64,000 nucleotides of DNA from IMG/VR virus record IMGVR_UViG_3300032288_004964, positions 248,001-312,000 of that record, one strand, 5' to 3'. The stretch's first letter is position 1, and the number at the start of each line of letters is the position of its first letter. Shown one piece after another: positions 6,657-25,511 of this stretch. The notes below the pieces were generated by a model that did no database searches, was not told the DNA's origin, and was given only the letters and a program-made list of their open reading frames with translations. Made by a program: the position numbers and the translations under genes.

Positions 6657-6737
6657 ATGAACACAACTACTAACATATTGTCTTATTATTATGAGGAGAA
6701 AAACCCTTCTATCAGACAAGTATTGTTTGTGTTGTAA
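6657..6737 (+). CDS. Attenuator leader peptide 1 (Tyr/Glu sensor) MNTTTNILSYYYEEKNPSIRQVLFVL
   Basis: TAT TAT TAT GAG GAG run; followed by a terminator and Tyr/Glu tRNAs. Confidence 0.85.
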   Translation: MNTTTNILSYYYEEKNPSIRQVLFVL

Positions 6738-6758
6738 TTATTATTATAATATTAAATG

Positions 6759-6795
6759 AAACCCAGTCTGATTATCAGACTGGGTTTTTTGTTTT
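6759..6795 (+). terminator. Attenuator terminator 1
   Basis: aaacccagtctga-tta-tcagactgggttt plus U tract; ATCAGAC at 6711-6717 in the leader is complementary to the 5' arm. Confidence 0.85.
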
Positions 6796-6815
6796 ATATA
6801 TGTTCTTTGAAAATT

Positions 6816-6906
6816 GGGAGTATAACGTCAGCGGAATGTAAGCCGCCCCTCGTAAATATATGGCGTATGGCTTGAGGTAACTAGTGTTCGAATCCTGGTA
6901 CTCCCA
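6816..6906 (+). tRNA. Atypical tRNA-Tyr-like gene (irregular anticodon arm containing GTA)
   Basis: GGGAGTA/TACTCCC acceptor identical to tRNA-Tyr at 7660; TTCGAATCC T-loop. Confidence 0.5.
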
Positions 6907-6911
6907 CAAAT

Positions 6912-6983
6912 GGTCTTGTCGACTAATGGTTAGGTCAACACCCTTTCAAGGTGTAGATGCGGGTTCGATCCCCGTCAAGACTA
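6912..6983 (+). tRNA. tRNA-Glu(TTC)
   Basis: Cloverleaf; acacc-CTTTCAA-ggtgt. Confidence 0.9.
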
Positions 6984-6992
6984 CAAATAAAT

Positions 6993-7078
6993 GCTACGGT
7001 ATGCAAACCGGAATAAGCGACCAGACTTTCAATCTGGACATCGAAAGATGTGTGCGGGTTCGAGCCCCGTCCGTAGTA
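6993..7078 (+). tRNA. tRNA with TTC (Glu) anticodon and long variable arm
   Basis: ccaga-CTTTCAA-tctgg; acatc-gaaa-gatgt V-arm; A73. Confidence 0.8.
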
Positions 7079-7081
7079 CAA

Positions 7082-7223
7082 AAATATCAGGAGTACCTGT
7101 CGTAGAAAGTTAATCACTTTCCCTGATATTTATAAAACTCAATGAAGTAAGTGACTTTAGGTAGTACCGACAGGAGGGTGAATTTGATTAAGTTCTTTGG
7201 GGTTCGAATCCCACCATTGAGTT
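7082..7223 (+). ncRNA. Hairpin plus tRNA-like element (acceptor stem and T-arm) with potential mutual pairing
   Basis: actcaatg/cattgagt stem; GGTTCGAATCC; cctgtcg(7096)/cgacagg(7168) complementarity. Confidence 0.45.
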
Positions 7224-7228
7224 GTTTT

Positions 7229-7312
7229 GGGAATGCGCCAACGTTGGAGAGTTGGGCTAGTCTGTAAAACTAGTGGCTTATGCCTGAGTGAGTTCGATTC
7301 TCACCATTCCCA
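7229..7312 (+). tRNA. tRNA-Tyr(GTA)
   Basis: ctagt-CTGTAAA-actag; long V-arm. Confidence 0.85.
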
Positions 7313-7316
7313 CAAG

Positions 7317-7541
7317 ATGAAGATAATAGATTTTTTAATACAAGTAGGTACCTTCAAAAGTAAAGGTGAGGCAATTAGAGCTGTAAAAAACAAAATGACT
7401 TTGAAGATAAGAGGTACTGATGAAAGTAATGTTCAATATAAAGATATCATAATAGATGAAAGTAATATAAATGGTTATATCTATATTGAAAATGAAAAGG
7501 TTTATGTAACAAATTTTGATATAAAAGATTTGGTAGATTGA
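7317..7541 (+). CDS. Small S4-like RNA-binding-domain protein
   Basis: True start likely ATG 7317 after the tRNA; IIDFLIQVGTFKSKGEAIRAV resembles the S4 motif of the TyrRS C-terminus. Confidence 0.55.
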   Translation: MKIIDFLIQVGTFKSKGEAIRAVKNKMTLKIRGTDESNVQYKDIIIDESNINGYIYIENEKVYVTNFDIKDLVD

Positions 7542-7578
7542 ACTTTTTTATTTATCTTTGTAAAACAAATATAAAAAT

Positions 7579-7651
7579 GCACCGTTAGTGAAGCGGCTAA
7601 CACGTCTCCCTTTCACGGAGAAGATCATCGGTTCGAACCCGATACGGTGTA
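7579..7651 (+). tRNA. tRNA-Glu(TTC)
   Basis: tctcc-CTTTCAC-ggaga; own TTTG...TATCTTTG promoter at ~7529-7562. Confidence 0.9.
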
Positions 7652-7659
7652 CAAATTTT

Positions 7660-7739
7660 GGGAGTATCGCATAGCGGCAATTGCAGTAGACTGTAAATCT
7701 ACCCTTTCGAGTTCGAAGGTTCGAGTCCTTCTACTCCCA
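7660..7739 (+). tRNA. tRNA-Tyr(GTA)
   Basis: gtaga-CTGTAAA-tctac. Confidence 0.9.
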
Positions 7740-7743
7740 CAAA

Positions 7744-8373
7744 TTATATATCAGAGTCACTCCTAAGTAATCCACACTTTTGACACTCTTCAAATCCATC
7801 ACCATCTTTATCTCCCCAAATGTGTTCACAATTTCTGTGTTCAAAATATTCATCAATATCCCCATCACCATCAGTATCATATCCGTCATTAACACCATCA
7901 CCATCTTCATCAACTTCAACCTTTTCAAAAACAGGTTTTGACTCGACTGGAATATTAACTACTTCAGTTTTTCTTTTCATTGATGATGTATAGTCAGGCA
8001 TAACTGTTTCTTTCTTTGGTTCATCCGGAAACTCACCTGCTTTTGAAAGTGACATTCCATCCTCTTCATCAACTTTTTGAATTAACATTTTATCTCTATC
8101 TTCTGAATTAAATCAATAATCAATAACTTTATTTAAATTACCAACAAAAGCACCTAATAAAATTAATAACATTTCTTTCCAGTCCTCTCCAATTGATATT
8201 CCAAAAAATACCGCTGAATTAATACCAACAATTATAAGTATAAATATACCTAATACTATGGCGGTTATTCTCCATCTATTTGCCTGCATTTGCTGAAGCA
8301 TATAATAAAATCTATTTTTATCTTCAACTTTTATATAATCTGTTTTACTACTAAAGAATTTTCCCAATCCCAT
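7744..8373 (-). CDS. Two-TM membrane protein with acidic DxDGDG C-terminus, interrupted by an in-frame TGA at 8113-8115
   Basis: ORFs 8113..8373 and 7744..8088 share a frame and are joined by TGA-TTT-AAT-TCA-GAA-GAT-AGA-GAT-AAA. Confidence 0.6.
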
Positions 8374-8476
8374 AATTAATTTTTATTTTTATATATTAAT
8401 TTAAAAATAAAAAAAATAAAAAAATTATTAGGGGGAGTGAAACTTTTTATATATATTTGTATAAGAGATTAAAACT

Positions 8477-8560
8477 ATGAAAAATTTACATAACATATCA
8501 ATAGCGATTATAGCGGGCGGCGCGGGGAGCGACTGTCATTGGCTGAGTTATGTGTTGTAA
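8477..8560 (+). CDS. Attenuator leader peptide 2 (Ile/Ala/Gly sensor) MKNLHNISIAIIAGGAGSDCHWLSYVL
   Basis: ATA/GCG/GGC/GGG codon run; followed by a terminator and Ile/Gly/Ala tRNAs. Confidence 0.85.
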   Translation: MKNLHNISIAIIAGGAGSDCHWLSYVL

Positions 8561-8587
8561 ATAATAAATATATTTATAATAATATTG

Positions 8588-8618
8588 AAACCCAGTCACA
8601 AAATGACTGGGTTTTTTT
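8588..8618 (+). terminator. Attenuator terminator 2
   Basis: aaacccagtca-caaaa-tgactgggttt plus U tract; tggctgagtt (8540-8549) can pair with the 5' arm. Confidence 0.85.
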
Positions 8619-8627
8619 AATTTATAT

Positions 8628-8701
8628 AGGTGAGTAGCTTAGATGGTAAAAGCATGTGTCTTATACACACAAGATAGTGGGATCGTTACCCACCTCACCT
8701 A
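8628..8701 (+). tRNA. tRNA-Ile(TAT)
   Basis: tgtgt-CTTATAC-acaca; T-loop ATCGTTA. Confidence 0.85.
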
Positions 8702-8929
8702 CTGAAAAAAATAAAAATGAAAGGAAAAATGAAAAGTTGAAATTGAATTGTTGGTTTATTTATAGATGTGTTAATAGTAATATCTATTTTCACCGTGTTA
8801 AATAAGAATATTAAATGTCGTATTTATGAAAATGAATATGAGACATGGGTACCTGACTTAAACGGTAACATACAACGTAAAGAAACTAAAACAATTGTTA
8901 TTAACTTCTTAAGAAGATTAGGATAACAA

Positions 8930-9003
8930 GCAATAGTGGTGTTAATGGTTTAGCACATCTGACTTCCAATCAGAAGGTGTCGGTTCGAATCCGGTCTAAT
9001 GCA
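8930..9003 (+). tRNA. tRNA-Gly(TCC)
   Basis: tctga-CTTCCAA-tcaga. Confidence 0.85.
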
Positions 9004-9050
9004 CAAAGTGAGAAAACACTTAAAAACCATCCCACCAGGATGTAAAAATC

Positions 9051-9133
9051 GCGGGTGTAGTATAGTGGAGGCGAAAGCCGTATTATATCGGTCTTCCAAA
9101 CCGAAGATGTGAGTTCGATTCTCATCACCCGCT
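9051..9133 (+). tRNA. tRNA-Gly(TCC) with D-loop hairpin insertion
   Basis: tcggt-CTTCCAA-accga; ggc-gaaa-gcc in the D-loop. Confidence 0.85.
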
Positions 9134-9146
9134 CAAATAATGTAAT

Positions 9147-9222
9147 GGGGTTACATGTACCAAGGCTTAGGCGAGACTGCTTTGCAAGCAATCTGTGGTG
9201 GGTTCGATTCCCACTAGCTCCA
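9147..9222 (+). tRNA. tRNA-Ala(TGC)
   Basis: TTTGCAA loop; G3.U70 pair; atypical D arm. Confidence 0.75.
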
Positions 9223-9234
9223 CAAAAAAAACAA

Positions 9235-9307
9235 GCGAAAGTAGCTCAGTTGGTAGAGCGTAACCTTGCCAAGGTTAAGGTCGCGGGTTCGAGACCCGTC
9301 TTTCTCT
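9235..9307 (+). tRNA. tRNA-Gly(GCC)
   Basis: taacc-TTGCCAA-ggtta. Confidence 0.85.
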
Positions 9308-9308
9308 C

Positions 9309-9452
9309 AAGATAGTAGCAATGTAAGAGTGTTACTTCGTATTTCAAACGACTAGTTCAGGTTCGAATCCTGGGTTCCGCTCAAAATAATATAAGCGGAA
9401 TTAGTGTAACGGCAGCACAGTAAAAACACACTCAGCAAATTTTCTCTATCTT
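9309..9452 (+). ncRNA. YrlA/Y-RNA-like permuted tRNA mimic
   Basis: Long closing stem (agatag/ctatct, gagtgt/acactc, ttact/agtaa) enclosing T-arm, loop-closed acceptor stem, then D-arm. Confidence 0.6.
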
Positions 9453-9456
9453 ATTA

Positions 9457-9529
9457 GGGCCAGATGCCAACGGCAGGTCAACTCGCTTGCACCGAGATTG
9501 TTTGGGTTCGATTCCCACTGTGTCCACCA
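9457..9529 (+). tRNA. Atypical tRNA-Ala(TGC), encoded CCA
   Basis: ctcg-CTTGCAC-cgag; G3.U70; bulged acceptor stem. Confidence 0.65.
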
Positions 9530-9559
9530 ATGTATTTGGACAAGAACCTAAATTAAAAT

Positions 9560-9590
9560 AAAAAAAGCCTCATTTGATGAGGCTTTTTTT
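9560..9590. terminator. Bidirectional intrinsic terminator
   Basis: aaaaaaagcctcat-ttg-atgaggcttttttt between convergent units. Confidence 0.8.
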
Positions 9591-9592
9591 AT

Positions 9593-11056
9593 TTAAGATA
9601 TTTTAATTTTCATTTTTGTTCCGGTGTCTATTTTATCACAGGATAAATCAAATTTGTGTTCTTTTAATATGGCAAAACAGATATTTAGTCCAAGCCCGGA
9701 TTCACTTTCTTTCTCTACTGAATAAGAAGATAATATTTTATCAAATTTATTTTGAGTCAATCCTATACCATTGTCTTCAATAATTAAATATTCATTCTCC
9801 ATGTATATTTTAACTTTTTTACTTTCGCTTTTATTATATTTTAAACCATTTTTTATTAGATTATCAATAGCGTTCCAGAAAAGTGTCTCATTTACTATAG
9901 CATTTGGTAAATCTTCGACTTCTACTTGTGTAGAATATGATGTTGTGAGAATACATCTATTTAATAAATCTTTTAAATTTACATCAGTTTTATCTAACAC
10001 TACATTTTGTTTAACAAGATTGGTAAACTCATATACCGACTTATAAACTTTTTGAGTATGATTAAGTCCTTCTTTAATCATTTTAACTGGTCCATCAATT
10101 TTTAATTTTTGTAATTCTTCTGGAGTAACTCTTTTCTCTAAAGAGTTTATACCTCGAGGAATATAAGTATTTATACCAGAGTGCATATCATGTCTAATAA
10201 TTCTAGCGGCATGTTCTAAATAAGTATTCTTTTTATTAATATCTCTTAGTTGTTTTTCAATTTCTTTATCTTGTACTTTAATTGTTTTTCTTTGTAAAAG
10301 AGCAAGTATAGAAAGCCCCATAATTGAAGCACATATAATTGCCCATATTAAATAAGTTCTTAATTTTGATTTTTGAACTTCTAAATCTTTATTTTCTACT
10401 TGTAACTCTCCTTTAACAACAGTAAGATCTATTATGTCTTTTTCTTTAGATAATGTTTTAATTGTACCTGTCTTAGAATCTATTACTTGTTGATTAGCAT
10501 TAGCCTTTTGTAGTGAATCTTTTTCAAATATTAATTTTTTAATTTTGTTATCAATTTCTTCAGCTACCTTTTTTAAGTCTTCTTTTGATAAATTATCATA
10601 AGATTGTGGAAGATTTTTAATAAAATTTTGGTCATTCTTAACTTGATTAGCTTCATTTTCATCTAATTCTGCAGGAGTAGGTGCGGGTACCATTATCTCT
10701 TTGATAAGATAAATATACTCTTTAGAAGCAGATATTTGTGATTCAATAGGACGTATTTTTGAGTTAATAGACTTGTTGAACCACCAATTAGCTCCCTCAA
10801 ATTCTTTTCTCGAATAAAGAGCCAATCCTATTTCTAAACTAATTGATTTTTCTTCAGGTGATAATTCCGAATTTTCGCTATCTCTGATTTTATAGATATC
10901 AATTTTATCCATAAGATTATTAATGTAATTATCATCTGGGCAAATAGGAACTCCTTGGTCCCAAACAGATTCAACACTTTCTGTTGTATCTATCTTAGTT
11001 TGTGAATAAGAGGCCAAACAGATAAGGCTAAATAATATTAAGAAATATTTTTTCAT
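9593..11056 (-). CDS. Membrane sensor histidine kinase
   Basis: Signal peptide, TM helix, H-box RHDMHSG, N-box NLIKNGLKY, G1 DNGIG, G2 GLGL. Confidence 0.85.
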   Translation of the reverse strand: MKKYFLILFSLICLASYSQTKIDTTESVESVWDQGVPICPDDNYINNLMDKIDIYKIRDSENSELSPEEKSISLEIGLALYSRKEFEGANWWFNKSINSKIRPIESQISASKEYIYLIKEIMVPAPTPAELDENEANQVKNDQNFIKNLPQSYDNLSKEDLKKVAEEIDNKIKKLIFEKDSLQKANANQQVIDSKTGTIKTLSKEKDIIDLTVVKGELQVENKDLEVQKSKLRTYLIWAIICASIMGLSILALLQRKTIKVQDKEIEKQLRDINKKNTYLEHAARIIRHDMHSGINTYIPRGINSLEKRVTPEELQKLKIDGPVKMIKEGLNHTQKVYKSVYEFTNLVKQNVVLDKTDVNLKDLLNRCILTTSYSTQVEVEDLPNAIVNETLFWNAIDNLIKNGLKYNKSESKKVKIYMENEYLIIEDNGIGLTQNKFDKILSSYSVEKESESGLGLNICFAILKEHKFDLSCDKIDTGTKMKIKIS

Positions 11057-11153
11057 AGTGGTTGTATAATTTATTTTTAAAAAACTTCTTCAATCACTAT
11101 ATATATTATTTCAGGATTGAAAAACCTTTATAATATTATAATATATAATTTAT

Positions 11154-11291
11154 ATGAATGAGGAAATTGAAAAAATACTAAAAGAGATTGCTGAGAAAAA
11201 TATAGAAAAATTTGGACCACTTCATGAAGAATGTGGGATGTATCAATATTTCTGTAGATGTAAAACTAATGAAAAAAATCCACTTATATAA
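11154..11291 (+). CDS. Small hypothetical protein (45 aa)
   Basis: MNEEIEKILKEIAEK...; TAATATATA motif upstream, terminator downstream. Confidence 0.5.
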   Translation: MNEEIEKILKEIAEKNIEKFGPLHEECGMYQYFCRCKTNEKNPLI

Positions 11292-11303
11292 GTGGATTTT
11301 TTA

Positions 11304-11690: not shown

Positions 11691-11729
11691 AATTGTATAT
11701 ATTATTTTTTTTACATATATTTGTAGACT

Positions 11730-12317
11730 ATGATTAAAATTTTAGGTAAAATCCCAAAAGGTGAGTTTGGTTTAGCATGTTCCGGTGGAGTTGATTCTAT
11801 GGCTATTCTTGATTTCCTTATTACCGGGAATCATATTCCACATATTTTATACTTTAATCACAATACAAAACATGGTGATGATGCTGAAAAGTTTATTACT
11901 GATTATTGTAAAGAAAAAAATCTTAAATTAACAATCGGTAGAACATATCTTAAACCAACTTCAAATAAGGAAAAGATTTGGAGTAATGCTCGTTATGAAT
12001 TCTTTTCAAAATTTGATTTTCCTATCATGACTTGTCACCACTTAGATGATTGTGTAGAAACATATATCTTCTCTTGTCTGAGAGGATTTCAATCTGTTAT
12101 CCCATACTCTAAAGGTAATGTGATTAGACCGTTCTTATTGAATGAAAAATCGGTATTTACTAAATGGTGCATTGATAAGGAAGTTCCATTTATTCAAGAT
12201 GATTCAAATGATTGCTTAGACTATTCAAGAAATAGAATTAGACATCAAATTGTACCTGAGTCTTTATTAGTGAACCCAGGATTGAAAACAGTTGTTAAGA
12301 AAATGGTATCAAAATAA
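11730..12317 (+). CDS. tilS: tRNA(Ile)-lysidine synthetase (short form)
   Basis: PP-loop SGGVDS, HHLDD, IRPFL, DDSN...SRNRIRH motifs. Confidence 0.85.
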   Translation: MIKILGKIPKGEFGLACSGGVDSMAILDFLITGNHIPHILYFNHNTKHGDDAEKFITDYCKEKNLKLTIGRTYLKPTSNKEKIWSNARYEFFSKFDFPIMTCHHLDDCVETYIFSCLRGFQSVIPYSKGNVIRPFLLNEKSVFTKWCIDKEVPFIQDDSNDCLDYSRNRIRHQIVPESLLVNPGLKTVVKKMVSK

Positions 12318-12377
12318 ATTTGATACTTTAATTTATCTTTCTTATATTTGTATAATTAACCACTTAAAAATATTACT

Positions 12378-12494
12378 ATGTCTAAGATGAAAGAAATTTA
12401 TATGGAAATTCAAGAACAATTTCCTAATGGTGAAATCCCTGCAGATTTTAATTTTGATGAGTATATTACTCAAAAAGTCTCTAAAATTAAATAA
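12378..12494 (+). CDS. Small hypothetical protein (38 aa)
   Basis: MSKMKEIYMEIQEQF...; host-type promoter upstream. Confidence 0.5.
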   Translation: MSKMKEIYMEIQEQFPNGEIPADFNFDEYITQKVSKIK

Positions 12495-13800: not shown

Positions 13801-13890
13801 ATTAGGCAGATATAAAACTTTTATCTATATTTGTATAAAATAATGACAAAATAAACAAAAGGGACAAAAACTTTTTAATATATATACACA

Positions 13891-14001
13891 ATGACAACAA
13901 TTAATTTAAATATGAACATGAATACACTGACAGTGGTGAATAATACGTTATGTATTAGACCTTGTGAGGGTTTTGATCTATTTAAAGGATTTGTCAATTA
14001 A
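13891..14001 (+). CDS. Attenuator leader peptide 3 MTTINLNMNMNTLTVVNNTLCIRPCEGFDLFKGFVN
   Basis: First 23 codons use only M,T,I,N,L,V,C,R, the amino acids of the downstream tRNA cluster. Confidence 0.85.
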   Translation: MTTINLNMNMNTLTVVNNTLCIRPCEGFDLFKGFVN

Positions 14002-14029: not shown

Positions 14030-14062
14030 AAAACCCTCAGTCAAAAACTGAGGGTTTTTTTA
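14030..14062 (+). terminator. Attenuator terminator 3
   Basis: aaaaccctcagt-caaaa-actgagggtttt; perfect 12-bp antiterminator tgagggttttga(13965)/tcaaaaccctca(14028). Confidence 0.9.
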
Positions 14063-14075: not shown

Positions 14076-14148
14076 GGACTGGAAGCTAGTATGGTACAGC
14101 TGCGGCCTGTTAAGCCGAGGATAGTGGGATCGTTACCCACCCAGTCCG
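14076..14148 (+). tRNA. tRNA-Asn(GTT)
   Basis: cggc-CTGTTAA-gccg; T-loop ATCGTTA. Confidence 0.8.
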
Positions 14149-14164
14149 CAAAAAGAAATAAAAA

Positions 14165-14243
14165 CGGTGCGTACCGAGCCACACTGATAATGTGGATATT
14201 CGTAATGGTGTTGCAAATGTAGGTTCAAATCCTATCGTACCGA
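14165..14243 (+). tRNA. D-armless tRNA-like gene with GAT (Ile) anticodon and long variable region
   Basis: cggtgcg/cgtaccg; ccaca-CTGATAA-tgtgg; GGTTCAAATCC. Confidence 0.55.
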
Positions 14244-14249
14244 CAAAAT

Positions 14250-14322
14250 GGTTCCTTCGTTCAACTGGACAGGACATCGGTCTTCTAAACCGAGGATATG
14301 GGTTCGAATCCCGTAGGGACTA
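14250..14322 (+). tRNA. tRNA-Arg(TCT)
   Basis: tcggt-CTTCTAA-accga. Confidence 0.9.
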
Positions 14323-14384
14323 CTGAGAGAGACCGTTTATAGTTTTTAACAGGACACAAGAGTGGAAGCGTAGAAAACTAAAAT

Positions 14385-14468
14385 GCCGGAGTGGCGAAAT
14401 GGTTAATACGCGCTAGCCTTAGAAGCTAGTGTCTATATGACGTGTGGGTTCGAGTCCCACCTCCGGTA
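14385..14468 (+). tRNA. tRNA-Leu(TAG)
   Basis: ctagc-CTTAGAA-gctag; long V-arm. Confidence 0.9.
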
Positions 14469-14500
14469 CTGAAGTGAAACTAAAGTTCACTACTAAAAAT

Positions 14501-14586
14501 TACTGTGTTGCCGTAGTGGCCGAACGGTCCAGACTGTTAATCTGGTGACGAATAGTCCAACGTAGGTTCGAATCCTACCACAGTAG
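14501..14586 (+). tRNA. tRNA-Asn(GTT) with long variable arm
   Basis: ccaga-CTGTTAA-tctgg; G73. Confidence 0.8.
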
Positions 14587-14591
14587 CAAAA

Positions 14592-14664
14592 GCCCCCGTA
14601 GCTTAATCGGGAAAGCACTTGTTTTACATACAAGATAGAGTCGGATCGTAACCGGCCGGGGGTA
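14592..14664 (+). tRNA. tRNA-Val(TAC)
   Basis: cttgt-TTTACAT-acaag; T-loop ATCGTAA. Confidence 0.85.
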
Positions 14665-14671
14665 CAAATAT

Positions 14672-14744
14672 TGTCAGTTAGCTCATTTGGTAGAGCACTT
14701 GTCTGATACACAAGAGGTGGTGGGATCGTAACCCGCACTGACAA
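14672..14744 (+). tRNA. tRNA-Ile(GAT)
   Basis: cttgt-CTGATAC-acaag; T-loop ATCGTAA. Confidence 0.85.
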
Positions 14745-14750
14745 CAAAAT

Positions 14751-14833
14751 GGTACTGTGGCCGAGCGGTGTCGAAAGACGAGAGGCAGTAGTCTGCAAAA
14801 CTACTCACACTGGTTCGAATCCAGTCAGTACCT
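14751..14833 (+). tRNA. tRNA-Cys(GCA) with D-loop hairpin insertion
   Basis: gtagt-CTGCAAA-actac; U73; gtc-gaaa-gac in the D-loop. Confidence 0.85.
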
Positions 14834-14845
14834 CAAAAAGAGTTC

Positions 14846-14917
14846 GCTCTCTAAGCATTAATGGTGATGCGCTAGTCTTGTAAACTAGATAAATCGGATC
14901 GTTACCGGTAGAGAGCT
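14846..14917 (+). tRNA. tRNA-Thr(TGT)
   Basis: ctagt-CTTGTAA-actag; T-loop ATCGTTA. Confidence 0.85.
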
Positions 14918-14922
14918 CAAAT

Positions 14923-15068
14923 CGGTAGGACCCTATATTCTGTGGTAACTTCTAGAGAAGCCACAAGATGAATCGGTCTGGGTTAAAAACCAAACTTGGT
15001 TATTTGATATTCTAGAAATCATCATTTAATTAAGATTGGGAAGGTAGGTTCGAATCCTACCCTACTGT
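14923..15068 (+). ncRNA. 146-nt tRNA-like RNA (acceptor stem and T-arm enclosing a multi-hairpin core)
   Basis: cggtagg/cctactg; gtagg-TTCGAAT-cctac; no recognisable anticodon arm. Confidence 0.5.
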
Positions 15069-15075
15069 CAAATAT

Positions 15076-15147
15076 TGTTCTGTAGCTCAATGGGAGAGCA
15101 CTTCCTTGACATGGAAGAGGTAGTCGGATCGTTACCGACCAGAACAA
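15076..15147 (+). tRNA. tRNA-Val(GAC)
   Basis: cttcc-TTGACAT-ggaag; T-loop ATCGTTA. Confidence 0.85.
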
Positions 15148-15148
15148 C

Positions 15149-15267
15149 TTAATGGATGGTGATTGAAAGAGTTACTTCGTTTAATGGAAAAACAATTGAC
15201 TTCTAATCAGTGCACGGTGGTTCGATTCCACCAGTATAAAACCTCTTTCTACCTTTTCCTCCATTAA
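15149..15267 (+). ncRNA. Y-RNA-like element carrying D, anticodon (TCT, Arg) and T arms on a long closing stem
   Basis: ttaatgga/tccattaa and gaaagag/ctctttc stems; shares GTTACTTCG...AGTA(T)AAAAC with the 9309 element. Confidence 0.55.
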
Positions 15268-15269
15268 AT

Positions 15270-15349
15270 GCTGATGTGGCACAGTGGCGACTGCACCAAC
15301 CTTGTAAGTTGGAACACAAACATCGGGGGTTCGAGTCCCTCCATCAGCT
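15270..15349 (+). tRNA. tRNA-Thr(TGT) with extended variable region
   Basis: ccaac-CTTGTAA-gttgg. Confidence 0.8.
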
Positions 15350-15356
15350 CAAAAAT

Positions 15357-15443
15357 GCTTCTGTGGCGAAATTGGCAGCACGCGAGGGACTTAAAATCCC
15401 TTGGACCGGAAAGTCCGTATCGGTTCGAGTCCGATCAGAAGTA
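15357..15443 (+). tRNA. tRNA-Leu(TAA)
   Basis: aggga-CTTAAAA-tccct. Confidence 0.9.
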
Positions 15444-15449
15444 CTAAAA

Positions 15450-15521
15450 TGCGATATAGCTTAATGGAAGAGCGGCTCCAGACATAGGGAGTTAGTCTTG
15501 GTTCGATTCCAGGTATCGCGA
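15450..15521 (+). tRNA. tRNA-Met-like with 8-nt anticodon loop (AGA-CAT-AG)
   Basis: gctcc-AGACATAG-ggagt; normal D and T arms. Confidence 0.6.
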
Positions 15522-15526
15522 CAAAT

Positions 15527-15596
15527 GGCGTGGCTTAGTGGAAAAGAGCAGTCTCTCATAAGGACTGATAAGTGGGTTCGAACCCCATACACGCTA
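15527..15596 (+). tRNA. Atypical tRNA with CAT anticodon (Met or Ile2)
   Basis: agtct-CTCATAA-ggact; short acceptor/D connector. Confidence 0.6.
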
Positions 15597-16302: not shown

Positions 16303-16443
16303 ATGTTAGGACTTTGTAAAAAACTGCAAGATAAAACTGGAATTGACCGTTTTTGGTTTAGATTACTTTTTATAATTTGGTTCATCGGTATTGGTGGATG
16401 GGCTATTATTTGGTATATTCTACTCTCGTTTATTATTGATTAA
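16303..16443 (+). CDS. PspC-domain small membrane protein
   Basis: MLGLCKKLQDKTGIDRFWFRLLFIIW...IIWYILL resembles the PspC GVCxGL...GID...RL pattern. Confidence 0.65.
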   Translation: MLGLCKKLQDKTGIDRFWFRLLFIIWFIGIGGWAIIWYILLSFIID

Positions 16444-16464: not shown

Positions 16465-17922
16465 ATGAAAAATATTGTAACAAGAATTGCTCCTTCTCCA
16501 ACTGGTAAGTTTGTCCATTTAGGAAACTTAAGAACTTTACTTTATAATTACTTCCTTGCTAAAAGACACGGTGGTAAATTCCTTGTGCGTTTAGAAGATA
16601 CTGACCGTGACCGTTATACTCCAGAATTTCTACAATATTTTAAAGATACTTGTGATTGGTTAGGAATTGTACCTGATAATTCTTTTTGGAATCCAGATCC
16701 ATCAATTGGTTCATTTATTCAATCAGAAAGAGATTATTCTGACAAAGTTAAATTTCTATTAGATAATGGATTGGCTTATTATGCTTTTGATACAAAAGAT
16801 GATTTAGATATTTTAAAGTCTAAAGGTCTTAAATATGATGCAACCACTCGTATGTCTATGAATAACTCATTGACAAGACCTGATACTGATATTAATTCTG
16901 TTCCTTATGTTATTCGTTTTGCTGTTACACCAGATGTAGATATTACTTTTACAGATGCAATCTTAGGTGATATTACTATTAACACAAATACTTTAGATGA
17001 TAAGGTTTTAATTAAATCCAATGGTATTGGTTCTTATCATCTTTGTAATGTTTGTGATGATCATGATATGAAAGTTACTCATGTTCTTCGTGGACAAGAA
17101 TGGGTAAATTCTACTCCTTTTCATATTCTTATGTATAAAGCATTTGGTTGGGATATTCCTACTTTTGCTCACTTACCTCTAATTATGAATCCTGATGGTA
17201 AAGGTAAACTAGCAAAAAGAACGGCTGCTAAATATGGTATTCCTATTGCGCCACTTGGTTATACTGATGATAATGGAGTCTATATCCCAGGTTGGAAAGA
17301 TTTAGGTTATGATCCTAAGGCATTTATCAATTCACTTGCTTTAATTGGTTGGAATCCTGGTAATGATGTTGAAGTTATGTCCTTAGATGATATGATTAAT
17401 TCATTTTCATTAGACAGAGTTCATAAATCAGGTGCTCGTTTTGATATTGATAAAGCAAAATGGATTAACTCACACTATTTAAAGGCTACTGATAATAAAG
17501 ATTTAATTCCTTTTGTTAATATTGTGGATAATAGATATTCTAATGATAAATTAGATAAGATTATTACTTTAGCAAAAGATAGAGCTACTTTTAAGACAGA
17601 CTTAAATAATATTGTTGATTTGTTTTTTGATACACCTGTTATTACAGACTATTCAAAAATTGATGATAACTATATAAAAGTAATGTCTAGTTTTGTTGAT
17701 AATATTGACTCTGTTGATTTCAATGATACTGATAGTATTAAATTAACAATTTCTTCTATCTGTGATGGGTTTGGAATTAAGATTGGTAAAGTAATGCCTG
17801 GTTTGAGAATTGCTTTAGTTGGTGGAATAAGTGGACCAGATTTAATGACCACGATGTCAATTCTTGGTAAAGACCAAGTAAAATTGAGAATTCTTAACTC
17901 TACAAAAACAGTTACTGTATAA
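16465..17922 (+). CDS. gltX: Glutamyl-tRNA synthetase
   Basis: RIAPSPTG, HLGN (HIGH), RLEDTD, DDHDM-VTHVLRG, KLAKR. Confidence 0.92.
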   Translation: MKNIVTRIAPSPTGKFVHLGNLRTLLYNYFLAKRHGGKFLVRLEDTDRDRYTPEFLQYFKDTCDWLGIVPDNSFWNPDPSIGSFIQSERDYSDKVKFLLDNGLAYYAFDTKDDLDILKSKGLKYDATTRMSMNNSLTRPDTDINSVPYVIRFAVTPDVDITFTDAILGDITINTNTLDDKVLIKSNGIGSYHLCNVCDDHDMKVTHVLRGQEWVNSTPFHILMYKAFGWDIPTFAHLPLIMNPDGKGKLAKRTAAKYGIPIAPLGYTDDNGVYIPGWKDLGYDPKAFINSLALIGWNPGNDVEVMSLDDMINSFSLDRVHKSGARFDIDKAKWINSHYLKATDNKDLIPFVNIVDNRYSNDKLDKIITLAKDRATFKTDLNNIVDLFFDTPVITDYSKIDDNYIKVMSSFVDNIDSVDFNDTDSIKLTISSICDGFGIKIGKVMPGLRIALVGGISGPDLMTTMSILGKDQVKLRILNSTKTVTV

Positions 17923-20271: not shown

Positions 20272-20369
20272 AATCTATATATTAAATTTACCTTTCTATT
20301 TAAATTCCTTCTAAATATTTTTTTATTAACAAAACTGTCCGTATATTTGTAGTATATAATTATAAAGAT

Positions 20370-21617: not shown

Positions 21618-22044
21618 AGAAGTTGAAATATTAAAAATTGGAAGTATCATACCACCAGTAAGAATTAATGGTATGTATGATACTTCCATCAAACCTACCG
21701 CTATGGTAGTTTTTGATGCTGGATCAATATATGATCACTATGTCTCTATTCTTAGAGAAGAATGTAAAAATGATTATAGATTTCTAAAAACAGAAAAGTC
21801 TATTATTTCAGATAGATTCTCAAATAGGGTTGCTGGTAGAATAGGAGAAGGACATTCTTATGTTGGTAAGTTTGATGATGAACCACAAGTTGGTAAATCA
21901 TTTACTCTTGGTAATGGATCTTGGTCTACAACTACAGTTATTAATATAATTGATGAGAATATAATTATCACAAAGAATTCTATATATGCTATTCATGATG
22001 TCTCGAAAATGAGAGATAAAAAATTGAAAGATTTAGGAATATAA
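21610..22044 (+). CDS. Hypothetical protein (C-terminal RDKKLKDLGI)
   Basis: ORF track; ATG at 21610 overlapping the upstream stop is the likely start. Confidence 0.65.
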   Translation: MTKEVEILKIGSIIPPVRINGMYDTSIKPTAMVVFDAGSIYDHYVSILREECKNDYRFLKTEKSIISDRFSNRVAGRIGEGHSYVGKFDDEPQVGKSFTLGNGSWSTTTVINIIDENIIITKNSIYAIHDVSKMRDKKLKDLGI

Positions 22045-22091
22045 ACCCACTTTTGTGGGTTTTTTTATGATACATTTTTAATATATAGAAT

Positions 22092-22820
22092 ATGAAACAT
22101 ATTAAAAAATTCAATGAAAATAAAGTATCAATTTTTGATTCTTCTGAATGGCTAAAACTTCTACCTAAAAAATTAACTATTATTAATCAAAATGGTGAGT
22201 TTACACTAGATGTTAGAGGTTTAGATCCAGAAGATGGTTATTCTGGTGTGTATAATTTGATGAATTCTATTTCTATTTCTTATTCTCAAAATACTATTGA
22301 GAAAGAAGATGATGATCCAACGGCTGATGGTGAACCAGATAGTCTTCAATTTGATATTTCTATTGTTAAAGATAACAAAGGTGATGAAGCAAATCCTTCA
22401 AATTCTTTAAGATTAAATATTGACTTAACATATGGTGACTCAATGATGTATGAGTTTACAATTGATTATCCAAATAAAGTAAATGTTCATCATTATAATG
22501 GTAAAGATTCTTTATATGATCCTGAAACATACTTTGGATTTTCTGATGAGTCATTAAAGGAATTAGTTAATTTTTTCAATAGATTTGGATTCAATACTAC
22601 TACAGATGATTTTAAATTTATAGATAGTGATATAGATAGTTATGATTATAAACATCCTACTGAAAAGTATTTAAAAGACCCTCAAACAATCGGTAATAAA
22701 TTAATACCTATGATTATGGATGATGAGATGAAATCAGAGATTGATACTCTAAAAGGTGGTGATAAGATCAAAAGATATCATGAATTTGATTTTAAAAAGA
22801 AAAATAATTTGGCGGATTAA
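22092..22820 (+). CDS. Hypothetical protein, paralog of 15597..16247
   Basis: MKHIKKFNE start; TAATATATA upstream. Confidence 0.75.
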   Translation: MKHIKKFNENKVSIFDSSEWLKLLPKKLTIINQNGEFTLDVRGLDPEDGYSGVYNLMNSISISYSQNTIEKEDDDPTADGEPDSLQFDISIVKDNKGDEANPSNSLRLNIDLTYGDSMMYEFTIDYPNKVNVHHYNGKDSLYDPETYFGFSDESLKELVNFFNRFGFNTTTDDFKFIDSDIDSYDYKHPTEKYLKDPQTIGNKLIPMIMDDEMKSEIDTLKGGDKIKRYHEFDFKKKNNLAD

Positions 22821-22987
22821 AAAATCTACCTTATATTTGTGAAACAATTGGGATGGGAAACGATTCAGATACAAGTCTCAATTTTTTTTTACAAAAATAA
22901 TTTGGCAGATATAAAACTTTTTTCTATATTTGTATAAAATAAGAACAAATAACAAAAAGAGAGAATAACTTTATAATATATACTGAA

Positions 22988-23086
22988 ATGAAAAACTTAA
23001 ACTTAAATATCGTTAACCCGCAACCTCAAGTTGTAATCGATCAGGATCCTGATACGATAGGGGCTAACTATGTGGTTTTAAGTTAA
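22988..23086 (+). CDS. Attenuator leader peptide 4 (Pro/Gln/Asp sensor) MKNLNLNIVNPQPQVVIDQDPDTIGANYVVLS
   Basis: PQPQ..DQDPD run; followed by a terminator and Asp/Pro/Gln tRNAs. Confidence 0.85.
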   Translation: MKNLNLNIVNPQPQVVIDQDPDTIGANYVVLS

Positions 23087-23110
23087 AGAATAATATTAAC
23101 TATGAAACGT

Positions 23111-23150
23111 AACCCAGTTAGTCGAAAGATTAACTGGGTTTTTTGTTTTT
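23111..23150 (+). terminator. Attenuator terminator 4
   Basis: aacccagttagtc-gaaa-gattaactgggtt plus U tract; ggctaact (23062-23069) pairs with agttagtc. Confidence 0.85.
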
Positions 23151-23223
23151 TATAAATTATAGAAATGAGTATATAAAAATAAAAAGTACTCTTTAGAGAA
23201 TAGAGTAAAAGAATTCTCAAATT

Positions 23224-23297
23224 GGTTCGTTAGTAGAGTTGGTTACAATATCGCACTGTCACTGCGAAGGTCACGGGTTCGAATCCCGTACGAACCG
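23224..23297 (+). tRNA. tRNA-Asp(GTC)
   Basis: tcgca-CTGTCAC-tgcga. Confidence 0.9.
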
Positions 23298-23302
23298 CAA
23301 AA

Positions 23303-23374
23303 GGTCTTGTCGTCCAATGGTAGGATAACCCGTTGTCTGCGGGAAGGTTGTGGGTTCGAATCCCATCAGGACCG
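23303..23374 (+). tRNA. tRNA-Asp(GTC)
   Basis: cccg-TTGTCTG-cggg; G73. Confidence 0.8.
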
Positions 23375-23383
23375 CTAAAATTT

Positions 23384-23456
23384 CGGGGTGTAGCGCAGTT
23401 GGTAGCGCGCCTGGTTTGGGACCAGGAGGTCGTCAGTTCGAGCCTGGCCACTCCGA
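23384..23456 (+). tRNA. tRNA-Pro(TGG)
   Basis: cctgg-TTTGGGA-ccagg. Confidence 0.9.
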
Positions 23457-23469
23457 CAAAAAATTAAAA

Positions 23470-23554
23470 CGAGATGTAGCCTAGAGGTTTCCGTATGGAT
23501 AAAGGCACTTGGTTTGGGACCAAGACGACGCAGGTTCGAATCCTGCCATCTCGA
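23470..23554 (+). tRNA. tRNA-Pro(TGG) with D-loop hairpin insertion
   Basis: cttgg-TTTGGGA-ccaag; tcc-gtat-gga in the D-loop. Confidence 0.85.
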
Positions 23555-23585
23555 CAAAGAAAAAAAATATTAATAAATAGAAATT

Positions 23586-23639
23586 ATGAGAACAACAACA
23601 CAATACCAACAACAACAACAAATTAATCCAACAGATTGA
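23586..23639 (+). CDS. Attenuator leader peptide 5 (Gln sensor) MRTTTQYQQQQQINPTD
   Basis: Six CAA codons; followed by a terminator, two tRNA-Gln and glnS. Confidence 0.9.
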   Translation: MRTTTQYQQQQQINPTD

Positions 23640-23667
23640 TAATGGTATCGTATTGTTTAAACTTTAC

Positions 23668-23702
23668 AAACCCTACTCAATCTGATTGAGTAGGGTTTTT
23701 TT
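23668..23702 (+). terminator. Attenuator terminator 5
   Basis: aaaccctactcaat-ctg-attgagtagggttt plus U tract; cagattga(23632)/tcaatctg(23677) antiterminator. Confidence 0.9.
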
Positions 23703-23704
23703 AT

Positions 23705-23778
23705 TGTCCGGTGGCGAAATTGGTAGACGCACTAAGCTTTGACCTTAGTTTTTGTAGGTTCGAACCCTACCCGGACAG
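23705..23778 (+). tRNA. tRNA-Gln(TTG)
   Basis: ctaag-CTTTGAC-cttag. Confidence 0.85.
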
Positions 23779-23785
23779 CAACAAT

Positions 23786-23857
23786 TGGAAAATAGTATAA
23801 TGGTTATTATTTCTGACTTTGAATCAGAAGATACAGGTTCGATCCCTGTTTTTCCAA
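23786..23857 (+). tRNA. tRNA-Gln(TTG)
   Basis: tctga-CTTTGAA-tcaga. Confidence 0.85.
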
Positions 23858-23876
23858 CTAAAAAAATATAAAAATT

Positions 23877-25511
23877 ATGAATTTCATAGAAGAAAAAATA
23901 TTAGAAAAAGGAAATCTCGATAAGTTAAAACTTCGTTTTCCACCAGAACCAAATGGGGCTATACTAAACGATGGTAGAGTTGTCGGTGGTCTTCACTTAG
24001 GACATGCTAAATCCATTATACTAAATTTTGGATTAGCAGAAAAGTATAATGCTACATGTGTGTTAAGGTTTGATGATACAAATCCAACTACTGAAAGAAA
24101 AGAGTTTGTAGATTCAATGATTGAGGATATCAAATGGCTTGGTTATACTCCAAGTGAAATCAGATACACATCTGATTATTTTGATTTTCTTTATGAATGT
24201 GCTGTTACTTTAATTAAGAAAGGATTAGCTTATGTTGATGATTCAACATCTGAAGAAATTGCTAACTTAAAAGGAACTCCAACTTCAGTTGGTAAAGACT
24301 CACCTTATAAATCTAGAAGTATAGAAGAAAACTTAGACTTATTTAATAGAATGAGATTAGGTGAATTCTATGAAGGTTCTAAAATCTTGAGAGCCAATAT
24401 TGATATGACTTCTCCTAATATGATTTTAAGAGATCCGGTTCTTTACAGAATAATATCTAAGTCACATCACAGAACTGGTGATACTTGGAAGATTTATCCA
24501 ATGTATGACTTTGCTCATCCACTTTCAGATTATAAAGAAGGTATCACTGATTCCCTTTGTACTTTAGAATTTGAAGTTCATAGACCTTTATATATGTGGG
24601 TCTTAGAAAATTGTGATTTAGAAAATTCTTTACCAGAAGAAACTGAGTTTGCTCGTTTGAACATTGACTATACGGTTATGTCAAAGAGAAAACTAAAAAG
24701 ATTAGTTGAAGAAGGATTTGTTGATGGGTGGAATGATCCAAGAATGCCAACTATTTCTGGTTTAAGAAGAAGAGGTTTTACTCCAAACGCTATTAAAGAT
24801 TTCTGCGATAGAATTTCTGTTACCAGAAAAGAATCAGTTGTTTCTTATTTGCTTTTAGAAGAATGTTTAAGAACTGATTTGAATATAGTTACCAATAGAT
24901 TAATGGGTGTTATGGATCCAGTTAAGTTAGTTATTACTAATTGGGATAGCGGAACTGAAATGGTTGAAGTTGAAAATAATCCTGGCGATGAAAGTGCTGG
25001 AGTGAGAATGATTCCTTTTAGTGGTGAATTATTTATTGAAAGAGAAGATTTCAGAGAAGAAGCCAATAAAAAATTTCATAGATTGAAATTAGGTGGAGAA
25101 GTAAGACTAAAAGGAGCTTATGTTATTATGGCTAACGAAGTTATCAAAGATGAATTTGGGGAAATCACTGAGATCAGATGTACTTATGATCCTTTAACAA
25201 GATCGGGTATGACTTTTGAAAGAAAGATTAAAGGAACTATTCACTGGGTATCTGCTGAACACGGAGTTAGAATGGATGTAAATGAATATGATAGATTGTT
25301 CAATGATGAATCACCAGATAAAAATGAAGATGATTTTATCAATTATATCAACCCAGATTCACTTATAATTAATGATAAGGCAATCTTTGAACCTCACGTT
25401 TTAAACGTCAAGGCACCAGTTCAAATGATGAGAAAGGGGTATTATATTTTAGATACTGACGGTAAAAGTTTCAATAAAACGGTAAGTTTGAAAGAAGGTT
25501 GGGTAGGTTAA
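23877..25511 (+). CDS. glnS: Glutaminyl-tRNA synthetase
   Basis: RFPPEPNG, HLGH, RFDDTNP, YPMYDFAH, MSKRK, GWNDPRMPT. Confidence 0.95.
   Translation: MNFIEEKILEKGNLDKLKLRFPPEPNGAILNDGRVVGGLHLGHAKSIILNFGLAEKYNATCVLRFDDTNPTTERKEFVDSMIEDIKWLGYTPSEIRYTSDYFDFLYECAVTLIKKGLAYVDDSTSEEIANLKGTPTSVGKDSPYKSRSIEENLDLFNRMRLGEFYEGSKILRANIDMTSPNMILRDPVLYRIISKSHHRTGDTWKIYPMYDFAHPLSDYKEGITDSLCTLEFEVHRPLYMWVLENCDLENSLPEETEFARLNIDYTVMSKRKLKRLVEEGFVDGWNDPRMPTISGLRRRGFTPNAIKDFCDRISVTRKESVVSYLLLEECLRTDLNIVTNRLMGVMDPVKLVITNWDSGTEMVEVENNPGDESAGVRMIPFSGELFIEREDFREEANKKFHRLKLGGEVRLKGAYVIMANEVIKDEFGEITEIRCTYDPLTRSGMTFERKIKGTIHWVSAEHGVRMDVNEYDRLFNDESPDKNEDDFINYINPDSLIINDKAIFEPHVLNVKAPVQMMRKGYYILDTDGKSFNKTVSLKEGWVG

Follow-up and report, generated by a model that had tools for sequence, protein, structure and literature searches.

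What decides when the transfer RNA (tRNA) genes of a phage are transcribed? We consider this question for a stretch of 64,000 nucleotides (nt) from the IMG/VR record IMGVR_UViG_3300032288_004964 (positions 248,001-312,000), referred to below as the window, in which all feature coordinates are counted. Five groups of tRNA genes in this window are each preceded by a module of the same design, in which an open reading frame (ORF) of 17-36 amino acids is followed by a strong hairpin and a U tract. In our view these modules are probably ribosome-mediated (leader-peptide) transcription attenuators that control tRNA genes and, in one case, two tRNA-Gln genes together with the gene for a glutaminyl-tRNA synthetase (GlnRS). 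The observations on which this reading is built are the module architecture, the match between the codons of each leader and the anticodons behind it, the predicted alternative structures with their spacing, and the conservation of all this with matching changes among related phages.

The window is AT-rich (22-41% GC per 2-kb segment, mostly 25-32%) and contains at least 29 tRNA genes, without exception on the + strand, and two class I synthetase genes, for GlnRS (23877-25511) and for a glutamyl-tRNA synthetase (GluRS, 16465-17922). Among GenBank phages only two homologous records were found, LR756502.1 (642 kb) and LR745206.1 (635 kb), which are the nearest GenBank records; both are described as “uncultured phage” and neither is annotated. 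Al-Shayeb et al. 2020 (PMC7162821) assigned Bacteroidetes hosts to huge phages that include these two. The closest cellular relatives of the window's GlnRS are mostly from Bacteroidota, with 51-57% identity. Further relatives were located in IMG/VR by using GlnRS as an anchor, which gave 15 loci.

The five modules, with leaders W1 to W5 (Table 1), were found by reading the sequence and with a script that locates ORFs and hairpins; together with a terminator scan, these approaches placed all five at or next to the positions at which the initial annotation of this DNA had proposed them. The five hairpins have stems of 12-14 bp with energies of -17 to -21 kcal/mol, followed by U6-8, and they are the top five + strand matches of the independent terminator scan, which reported 22 terminator-like sites in the window against 6.4 expected. 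The same annotation had described a promoter motif directly upstream of four leaders and a fifth leader nested inside the fourth tRNA cluster, and this arrangement is indeed present: W1-W4 start 18-58 nt 3' of such a motif, and a regular-expression search gave none for W5, which lies inside operon 4. From the end of the U tract to the first tRNA there are about 9 nt in W2, about 14 nt in W3 and 2-6 nt in W5; since this leaves no space for a further promoter, the tRNAs of these three groups would be made only by read-through.

The codon runs of the leaders were said to name the amino acids of the tRNAs behind the terminator, a claim that was upheld when it was scored with wobble rules, the codon frequencies of 45 long ORFs from the window serving as background. 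When seven leader classes were permuted against seven tRNA sets (the five of the window, and two from LR756502.1 that are rich in Lys, His and Phe (K/H/F) or in Ser and Arg (S/R)), the true pairing alone reached the top score, that is, 1 of 5040 permutations. Over 30 distinct leaders, 219 residues were matched at the amino-acid level where 89.4 were expected (Z = 15) and, conditional on the amino acid, the anticodons behind the leader could read the synonymous codon chosen in 63 cases, 39.7 being expected (Z = 5.5); these last statistics are inflated by shared ancestry, as homologues are not independent, whereas the class-level permutation is unaffected. The first 22 codons after the ATG of W3 are all decodable by the tRNAs downstream, a set that covers 34% of ordinary codons. 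In W2 the codons GCG (three), GGC (two) and GGG (one) each account for 3% of their synonymous family in the long ORFs, and these rare codons are readable by Ala-UGC, Gly-GCC or Gly-UCC. A Leu-rich leader in the related locus L016 has CTA, TTG and CTT twice each in front of Leu tRNAs with the anticodons TAG, CAA and GAG, and it has no TTA at all, though this is 62% of the Leu codons in long ORFs. A separate idea, that rare-codon tuning is specific to the sensor codons, was rejected: the non-sensor codons of the leaders are equally rich in G/C endings.

Folded from the ATG to the U tract, all five leaders are more stable than their shuffled versions (z = -4.0 to -5.4), with 0 of 200 shuffles as good in each case. 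The ribosome-free minimum-energy fold has a long-range closure between the 5' and 3' ends of the ORF (1:2 pairing) along with the terminator hairpin. Folding with and without a ribosome footprint, which had been suggested as a check, was done by cutting the transcript just after the 5' arm of the terminator and keeping a 27-nt footprint unpaired for each A-site position in turn. For each of the 12 leaders tested, a ribosome on or before the sensor codons is predicted to give the terminator 5' arm -8 to -16 kcal/mol of pairing with upstream sequence, and in all 12 this gain drops to about zero within 1-3 codons past the last sensor codon; without a ribosome it is -0.7 to -5.5 kcal/mol, except in W3 (-9.7) and its homologue (-8.9), which favour the antiterminator in that state as well. 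In each leader, the upstream partner of the arm (region 2) begins about 8-12 nt 3' of the last sensor codon, just outside a stalled ribosome. The predicted structures thus agree with the 1:2/2:3/3:4 geometry originally described, with a region 2 complementary to the terminator 5' arm and a closure of the ORF ends, the helices of W1, W2 and W4 being short. All expectations of ribosome-mediated attenuation that could be checked on the sequence were borne out.

Each leader pairs better with its own terminator arm than with the arms of other leaders (permutation p = 5e-5), and against dinucleotide shuffles the arm pairing reaches a Stouffer Z of -10 over 29 leaders; in these in-silico folds the antiterminator is strong for W3, W5 and many relatives. 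An alignment-based covariation analysis of ten Gln leaders (MAFFT and RNAalifold) recovered just 6 pairs of the terminator and no antiterminator, the Gln leaders being too divergent and indel-rich to align. In its place we have employed the duplex predictions for each sequence, the permutation of own against other arms and the shuffles. The Gln leaders keep region 2 at a constant position, over the stop codon, and its sequence changes along with the terminator arm: the pairs of region 2 and arm are CAGATTGA/TCAATCTG in the window, GGGTTCCGG/CCTGGAACT in L009 and AACTCAAGCTT/AAGCCTGGGTT in L015.

The fold profile would permit an antiterminator for any ribosome position 5' of region 2, beyond the sensor codons, and a start resembling M-[KNRT]-[NT]-x-x-N-I is common to all leaders. 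Both facts would suit a general timer of translation status, in which any slowing of ribosomes (through host shut-off, a late shortage of ribosomes, or stalls on the shared Asn/Thr/Ile/Leu codons of the N-terminus) opens all the gates together and the amino-acid runs are a minor bias. Such a timer, however, gives no reason for sensor runs that match the tRNAs down to synonymous choice and that change with them across phages, nor for each run to end 8-12 nt before region 2, the most effective position for a stall, and we regard it as improbable.

If the modules are leader-peptide attenuators, they might operate as follows. Host-type RNA polymerase would start at the Bacteroidota-type promoter and transcribe the short ORF, which a ribosome would begin to translate. 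With charged tRNA ample for all sensor codons, the ribosome would pass region 2, the ends of the ORF might re-pair behind it, and the 3:4 hairpin with its U tract would form, ending transcription before the tRNAs. Were the tRNA for a sensor codon scarce, the ribosome would stall, covering region 1 but not region 2, which lies 8-12 nt ahead; region 2 could then pair with the newly made 5' arm of the terminator, no terminator would form, and the polymerase would read into the cognate tRNA group. The new tRNAs, once charged, would lift the stall, so that each tRNA group would have a negative-feedback homeostat of its own, and where a leader combines different sensor codons, it would work as an OR gate. 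We infer from the sequence that the leaders are translated, that ribosome and polymerase are coupled, and that read-through responds to the supply of charged tRNA.

Table 1. Features of the five leader-tRNA modules, in window coordinates; pairings are predicted.
Feature	Coordinates	Strand	Description
Operon 1 promoter motif	6591-6622	+	TT[TA]GG-N19-TAnnTTTG, Bacteroidota type
Leader W1	6657-6737	+	26 amino acids, MNTTTNILSYYYEEKNPSIRQVLFVL; sensor run TAT TAT TAT GAG GAG at 6684-6698
W1 region 2	6711-6724	+	pairs with 6758-6772 when the ribosome is on the sensors; with region 1 (6675-6690) ribosome-free
W1 intrinsic terminator	6758-6788	+	14-bp stem, U tract to ~6797
tRNA group 1	6818-7311	+	Glu-UUC 6912-6983, Glu-UUC 6993-7078 (long variable arm), Tyr-GUA 7229-7311
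Odd units of group 1	6818-6908; ~7141-7225	+	degenerate Tyr-like; tRNA-like
Ungated copies	7529-7739	+	leaderless promoter 7529-7560, Glu-UUC 7579-7651, Tyr-GUA 7660-7739
Operon 2 promoter motif	8428-8459	+	
Leader W2	8477-8560	+	27 amino acids, MKNLHNISIAIIAGGAGSDCHWLSYVL; sensor run ISIAIIAGGAG (ATA x3, ATT, GCG x3, GGC x2, GGG)
W2 region 2	8540-8549	+	pairs with 8589-8598; ribosome-free with 8497-8507
W2 intrinsic terminator	8587-8615	+	
tRNA group 2	8628-9307	+	Ile-UAU 8628, Gly-UCC 8930, Gly-UCC 9051 (D-loop insert), Ala-UGC 9147, Gly-GCC 9235
Operon 3 promoter motif	13802-13833	+	
Leader W3	13891-14001	+	36 amino acids, MTTINLNMNMNTLTVVNNTLCIRPCEGFDLFKGFVN
W3 region 2	~13964-13977	+	GAGGGUUUUGAUC; perfect 12-nt complement of arm 14030-14043; z = -4.3 against shuffles
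W3 intrinsic terminator	14030-14058	+	
tRNA group 3 (first part)	14076-15596	+	Asn, Arg-UCU, Leu-UAG, Asn, Val-UAC, Ile-GAU, Cys-GCA (14751-14832)
tRNA group 3 (rest)	to 15596	+	Thr-UGU, Val-GAC, Thr-UGU, Leu-UAA, CAU tRNA with 8-nt anticodon loop, Met-CAU
Operon 4 promoter motif	22901-22932	+	
Leader W4	22988-23086	+	32 amino acids, MKNLNLNIVNPQPQVVIDQDPDTIGANYVVLS; sensors PQPQ and DQDPD
W4 region 2	23062-23073	+	pairs with 23112-23123; ribosome-free with 23007-23018
W4 intrinsic terminator	23109-23142	+	
tRNA group 4	23224-23553	+	Asp-GUC x2, Pro-UGG, Pro-UGG with D-loop insert (23470-23553)
Leader W5	23586-23639	+	17 amino acids, MRTTTQYQQQQQINPTD; Q Y QQQQQ, Gln codons all CAA
W5 region 2	23632-23646	+	overlaps stop codon; pairs with 23670-23684
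W5 intrinsic terminator	23668-23698	+	
tRNA group 5	23705-23857	+	two tRNA-Gln (UUG), then GlnRS
GlnRS gene	23877-25511	+	Pfam tRNA-synt_1c, 3e-93, plus both C-terminal domains

The same design recurs in about 14 related huge phages, namely LR756502.1, LR745206.1 and 12 IMG/VR contigs of 130-640 kb, and homologues of W1-W5 are present in both GenBank records. A strict detector places at least 130 of the 183 tRNAs in the related loci behind such a module, and some of those that it misses belong to real modules with weaker hairpins; in L012, Gln tRNAs are present without a leader. A lack of co-variation between leader composition and tRNA content in homologous loci had been named at the outset as grounds for abandoning the idea, and in these phages the two do change together. 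In addition to the homologues, LR756502.1 has the leader MRTINKHKHFSKLNKWFSNHRFEAKAFC before Phe-His-Phe-Lys-Lys-Lys (the K/H/F class) and MKTTIKNTSSRSRSSKSGEVRLYS before Arg-Ser-Arg (the S/R class), and nine further phages have Gln-rich leaders before tRNA-Gln, with GlnRS identity down to 57% and unrelated terminator sequences. The new classes are an H/S/R leader before Ser-His-His-Arg-Ser; a leader with F, C, W, P and Y before a Trp tRNA, where the contig ends; an L-rich leader with three Leu tRNAs behind it; and MKNICRNTINNNLIINNNTLCVIRVGMGLNRQV, which stands in front of tRNAs for Leu, Ile, Arg, Val, Asn, Thr and Cys. Leader composition shifts when a tRNA is regrouped, as seen for His, whose codons accompany its tRNA from the K/H/F to the S/R group. 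Homologous leader peptides keep their composition and shuffle their order (ISIAIIAGGAG, ISVGVIAIGAG, ISIAVIGNGAG), and the relatives vary synonymously, with Q runs that mix CAA and CAG and with varying Pro codons (CCG/CCT). Shuffled order and synonymous variation together indicate that selection acts on codon content in a fixed frame, and not on the peptide; the leader reading frame is kept in more than 30 homologues.

These comparisons bear on two simpler views of the modules. One is that nothing is regulated, the ORFs being micro-protein or small-RNA genes with ordinary terminators, or the hairpins leaky insulators that set a low and fixed level of tRNA. Short ORFs and terminators are, after all, common in AT-rich DNA, where an open frame of about 26 codons has a chance of about 10% by a base-composition estimate, and the antiterminators of W1, W2 and W4 are individually unremarkable. 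Yet the codon-match statistics, the start of the tRNAs 2-15 nt past the U tracts with no other promoter, and the persistence of the design despite unrelated terminators, with region 2 changing to fit, all speak for regulation; a peptide that conserves its composition and not its sequence argues against a functional micro-protein. An unregulated locus is thus very improbable. The other view is a sensing of the T-box kind, independent of translation, in which the leader codon runs would bind anticodons and uncharged tRNA would stabilise the antiterminator. This has the same output logic, leading from the status of a tRNA to the choice between terminator and antiterminator, and T-boxes are known tRNA-sensing leaders. 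Against it, each run is enclosed, in frame, by a conserved ATG and a stop codon, varies synonymously and comprises many codons instead of one specifier; no Stem I-like element is evident in the folds; and even at permissive thresholds no T-box or other Rfam model matched at more than about half of any gathering score. We regard it as extremely improbable.

Leaders are also found in front of synthetase genes. In the window, 19 nt without a terminator separate the second tRNA-Gln from the GlnRS gene, which is thus the last gene of the operon that the Gln leader W5 heads. In L011, a Gln leader (MSQTQTHIQQLQQQFDTKG) and a terminator (379-500) precede an ORF and GlnRS without any tRNA, and in LR745206.1 (L100 6176-6280) an Asn/Arg-rich leader (MKTMTINNRNRLTDII) and a terminator stand before a class IIb synthetase (Pfam tRNA-synt_2, 5e-29). 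This lineage employs one device for tRNAs and synthetases alike, and the leaders before synthetases tie it to the attenuators of the pheST and hisS type, which supports a real sensing of the charged-tRNA supply. At the GluRS gene of the window (16465-17922), a check for a leader gave a promoter and a hydrophobic ORF of 46 amino acids (16304-16442), with no terminator. An origin of the Gln module in a host, together with glnS, was considered and rejected: 0 of 77 cellular glnS loci, mostly from Bacteroidota, had a Q-rich upstream ORF or an upstream tRNA-Gln.

Several observations weigh against attenuation, or at least against a strict version of it. As for structure, W1, W2 and W4 have short antiterminator helices of 7-11 pairs, which taken one by one do not surpass those of shuffled sequences (z about -1 to -1.4). 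For W3 the antiterminator is favoured even without a ribosome (-9.7 kcal/mol), which makes its off state less clear and its 1:2 sequestration the weakest. In W1-W4 the stop codon is 12-24 nt past region 2, so that a ribosome at the stop codon would not mask region 2 as it does in trp; for the off state, regions 1 and 2 would then have to re-pair and close the ORF again, or kinetics would have to account for it. As for specificity, all leaders share an N-terminus rich in Asn, Thr, Ile, Leu and Lys, which would be sensed too; for some residues of a leader no tRNA follows (Ser in W2), and some tRNAs have hardly any codons in their leader (Arg-UCU in W3, with one AGA codon). The richness of the leaders in codons with G/C endings may reflect a structural constraint and not a tuning of the sensors. 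Finally, some tRNAs have no leader, namely those at the promoters 7529, 33450 and 33717 and the tRNAs at 6407, 33611, 33786 and 34845. The Glu tRNA at 7579 and the Tyr tRNA at 7660, for example, escape the gate because they have their own leaderless promoter. The original statement that the phage transcribes only the tRNAs whose charged pools are low was therefore too strong, given that some tRNAs have constitutive promoters and that the shared N-terminal codons would also be sensed.

The promoters call for some comment of their own. The 32-nt motif TT[TA]GG-N19-TAnnTTTG, searched as a regular expression, has ten copies of fixed spacing on the + strand of the window (6591, 7529, 8428, 13802, 22808, 22901, 31508, 33450, 33717 and 33896), of which four directly precede W1-W4 and the rest stand before leaderless tRNAs, a GOLLD RNA and at two other sites; nearly all copies front tRNA or non-coding RNA units and not protein genes. 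A scan for the sigma-70 consensus was rejected as uninformative in this window (115 sites against 116 expected), the relevant promoter being the TAnnTTTG motif. The copy at 22808, 90 nt 5' of the W4 promoter, is followed some 40 nt further on by a T9 run without a strong hairpin, and it may yield a very short transcript (22808-22890). A second conserved motif lies between promoter and leader ATG for W3 (13869-13885, AACTTTTTAATATATA) and W4 (22967-22983). This motif, AAAGGGA...AACTTTTTAATATATAC, occurs also at 6383-6399 (before an initiator tRNA), at 22072-22088, and in L001 and L002, and may be a phage-specific promoter that gives nearly leaderless mRNAs; across the window its 6 matches do not significantly exceed the 3.7 expected.

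The tRNA genes themselves were called with ARAGORN, followed by inspection of the T-arm and of the acceptor and anticodon stems. A call of Ser(gga) at 23470 was rejected: its anticodon stem-loop is the same as that of the neighbouring Pro(TGG), with a D-loop insert in addition, and it is thus a second Pro(TGG). ARAGORN missed Cys(GCA) at 14751-14832 and Ala(TGC) at 9147-9221, which both match leader codons, and each of the three corrections (Pro, Cys, Ala) improves the match between leader and tRNAs. Behind group 2, odd tRNA-like units continue up to 9526, with an operon-end terminator at 9563-9587, and group 3 also holds further tRNA-like units.

Many of these tRNAs are unusual in form. Three have a D-loop hairpin insertion of about 10 nt (Gly-UCC 9051-9132, Cys-GCA 14751-14832, Pro-UGG 23470-23553), and ARAGORN mislabels or misses them. 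Long variable arms, found in tRNAs of 79-89 nt, accompany Glu, Asn, Thr and Lys anticodons (6993-7078, 14501-14585, 15270-15348, and L001 5096-5365); in bacteria such arms are normally limited to Leu, Ser and Tyr tRNAs. Three tRNA-like genes have anticodon loops of 8 nt (15450-15520, 33611-33694 and 34845-34919, with the four-base anticodons acat, agta and attc according to ARAGORN), and these may decode quadruplets, suppress frameshifts or be degenerate. In ARAGORN's intron mode, an initiator-like tRNA-Met(CAT) at 6407-6501 has a 23-nt insertion directly 3' of the anticodon; the gene lacks a leader, and a AATATTTAATATATA motif lies upstream of it. Other tRNA-like units, at 6818-6908, ~7141-7225, 9310-9526 and 14165-14242, combine good T-arm and acceptor pairing with aberrant or expanded cores (up to 145 nt); further ones with expanded cores are at 14923-15067, 15173-15236 and 35000-35098, and conservation in LR756502.1 is seen for the unit at 14165-14242. 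Such units may represent pseudo-tRNAs or tRNAs with introns, or be of another nature. The GOLLD RNA (Rfam RF02032, 270 bits, model 1-416 at 34430-34837) has a separate copy of the promoter motif (33896-33927) in front of it and is flanked by tRNA or tRNA-like genes, the structured RNA probably starting near 33960. Two protein genes may also be mentioned: an ORF of 74 amino acids within the Glu/Tyr operon (7317-7541) has a weak match, below the cut-off, to a TyrRS C-terminal (S4-like) domain (Pfam PF22421, E = 0.006), and a PP-loop ATPase of 195 amino acids (11730-12317; Pfam ATP_bind_3, 5e-28; TilS-like), encoded near CAU tRNAs, is possibly a tRNA-Ile lysidine synthase.

What purpose might such attenuators serve? 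They may provide homeostasis of a translation supply run by the phage, or replace tRNAs that host defences have destroyed. A fuller form of the second idea is a distributed circuit of alarm and replacement against a host attack on tRNAs, in which an anticodon nuclease or host shut-off would remove isoacceptors, ribosomes would stall on the matching leader, and the phage tRNAs (and GlnRS), possibly nuclease-resistant copies, would come on only after that loss. We put this forward tentatively, as rather unlikely on balance; if true, it would give huge phages a codon-resolved, demand-driven translation supply independent of the host's stringent control.

tRNA genes are generally held to be controlled at the promoter (by growth rate and the stringent response) and by processing, and we know of no case in which the supply of a tRNA is measured by the translating ribosome and fed back onto the transcription of that same tRNA. 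If the modules work as predicted, they would bring a new kind of target under a textbook mechanism, would explain why the tRNA genes of huge phages are grouped by amino acid, and would make phage tRNA expression demand-driven and not constitutive. They would also furnish more than ten natural codon-specific sensors, usable as reporters of charged-tRNA pools in Bacteroidota, and would render the role of phage tRNAs testable, since codon compensation, replacement and counter-defence predict different inducing conditions for one and the same reporter.

The arrays of tRNA genes in phages have been seen as a compensation for codon usage or as a replacement for host tRNAs lost to degradation or defence nucleases, accounts that leave the control of expression aside. 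The Bacteroidota-infecting huge phages of Al-Shayeb et al. 2020 (PMC7162821) carry the same kind of cargo, many tRNAs along with synthetases, and the words attenuat-, leader and terminator do not occur in that paper. No description of leader peptides before tRNA genes was found in the open-access literature, in Rfam or in annotation, which is no proof that none exists. For the Rfam leader families His_leader, Thr_leader, Phe_leader, Trp_leader and Leu_leader, all scores were below the gathering cut-off; the highest (Phe_leader 24.8 bits against 55, His_leader 18.9 against 49, Thr_leader 17.8 against 55) were all driven by the terminator hairpin. The T-box model (RF00230) gave no match at the gathering score in the window, and the three leaders searched at E <= 1 gave none either.

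In T-boxes the RNA itself binds the tRNA, independently of translation, by means of Stem I, just one specifier codon and the T-box bulge. The phage leaders resemble these riboswitches in that the state of a specific tRNA would choose between terminator and antiterminator before translation-related genes, but they have none of Stem I, the single specifier codon and the bulge. Another parallel is that of mycobacteria, in which, according to the accessible part of the report, polycysteine leaderless short ORFs are Cys-responsive attenuators (bioRxiv 10.1101/834739). There too, as that part describes it, a run of one type of codon senses the supply of an amino acid and controls the operon downstream, although the targets are Cys-related protein genes in a bacterium.

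The classical leader-peptide attenuators are those of amino-acid biosynthetic operons (trpL, hisL, leuL, thrL, ilvL/ivbL and pheL), and E. coli pheST, with pheM, is a case of such attenuation for synthetase genes. With the trp, his, leu, thr, ilv and phe leaders our modules would share a translated short leader, clustered regulatory codons, mutually exclusive 1:2, 2:3 and 3:4 pairings and an intrinsic terminator, and the thr and ilv leaders, which respond to several amino acids, parallel W2-W4. They differ from the classical attenuators in lying on a phage genome, behind a Bacteroidota-type promoter and without any sequence or Rfam relationship; in controlling tRNAs instead of enzymes, so that the product would feed straight back on the sensor; and, by comparison with trp, in a stop codon well past region 2, the off state probably being a closure of the 5' and 3' ends of the ORF and not a ribosome parked on region 2. 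A His leader also precedes hisS paralogues in bacilli (PMC2965389). Like the pheST and hisS leaders, those of W5, L011 and LR745206.1 (L100) would control a synthetase gene by way of cognate codons; unlike them, W5 has tRNA genes between leader and synthetase, and four of the five modules in the window control tRNAs only. The targets of classical attenuators are biosynthetic enzymes or aminoacyl-tRNA synthetases, and those of the four modules are neither: the novelty here is one of target, not of mechanism.

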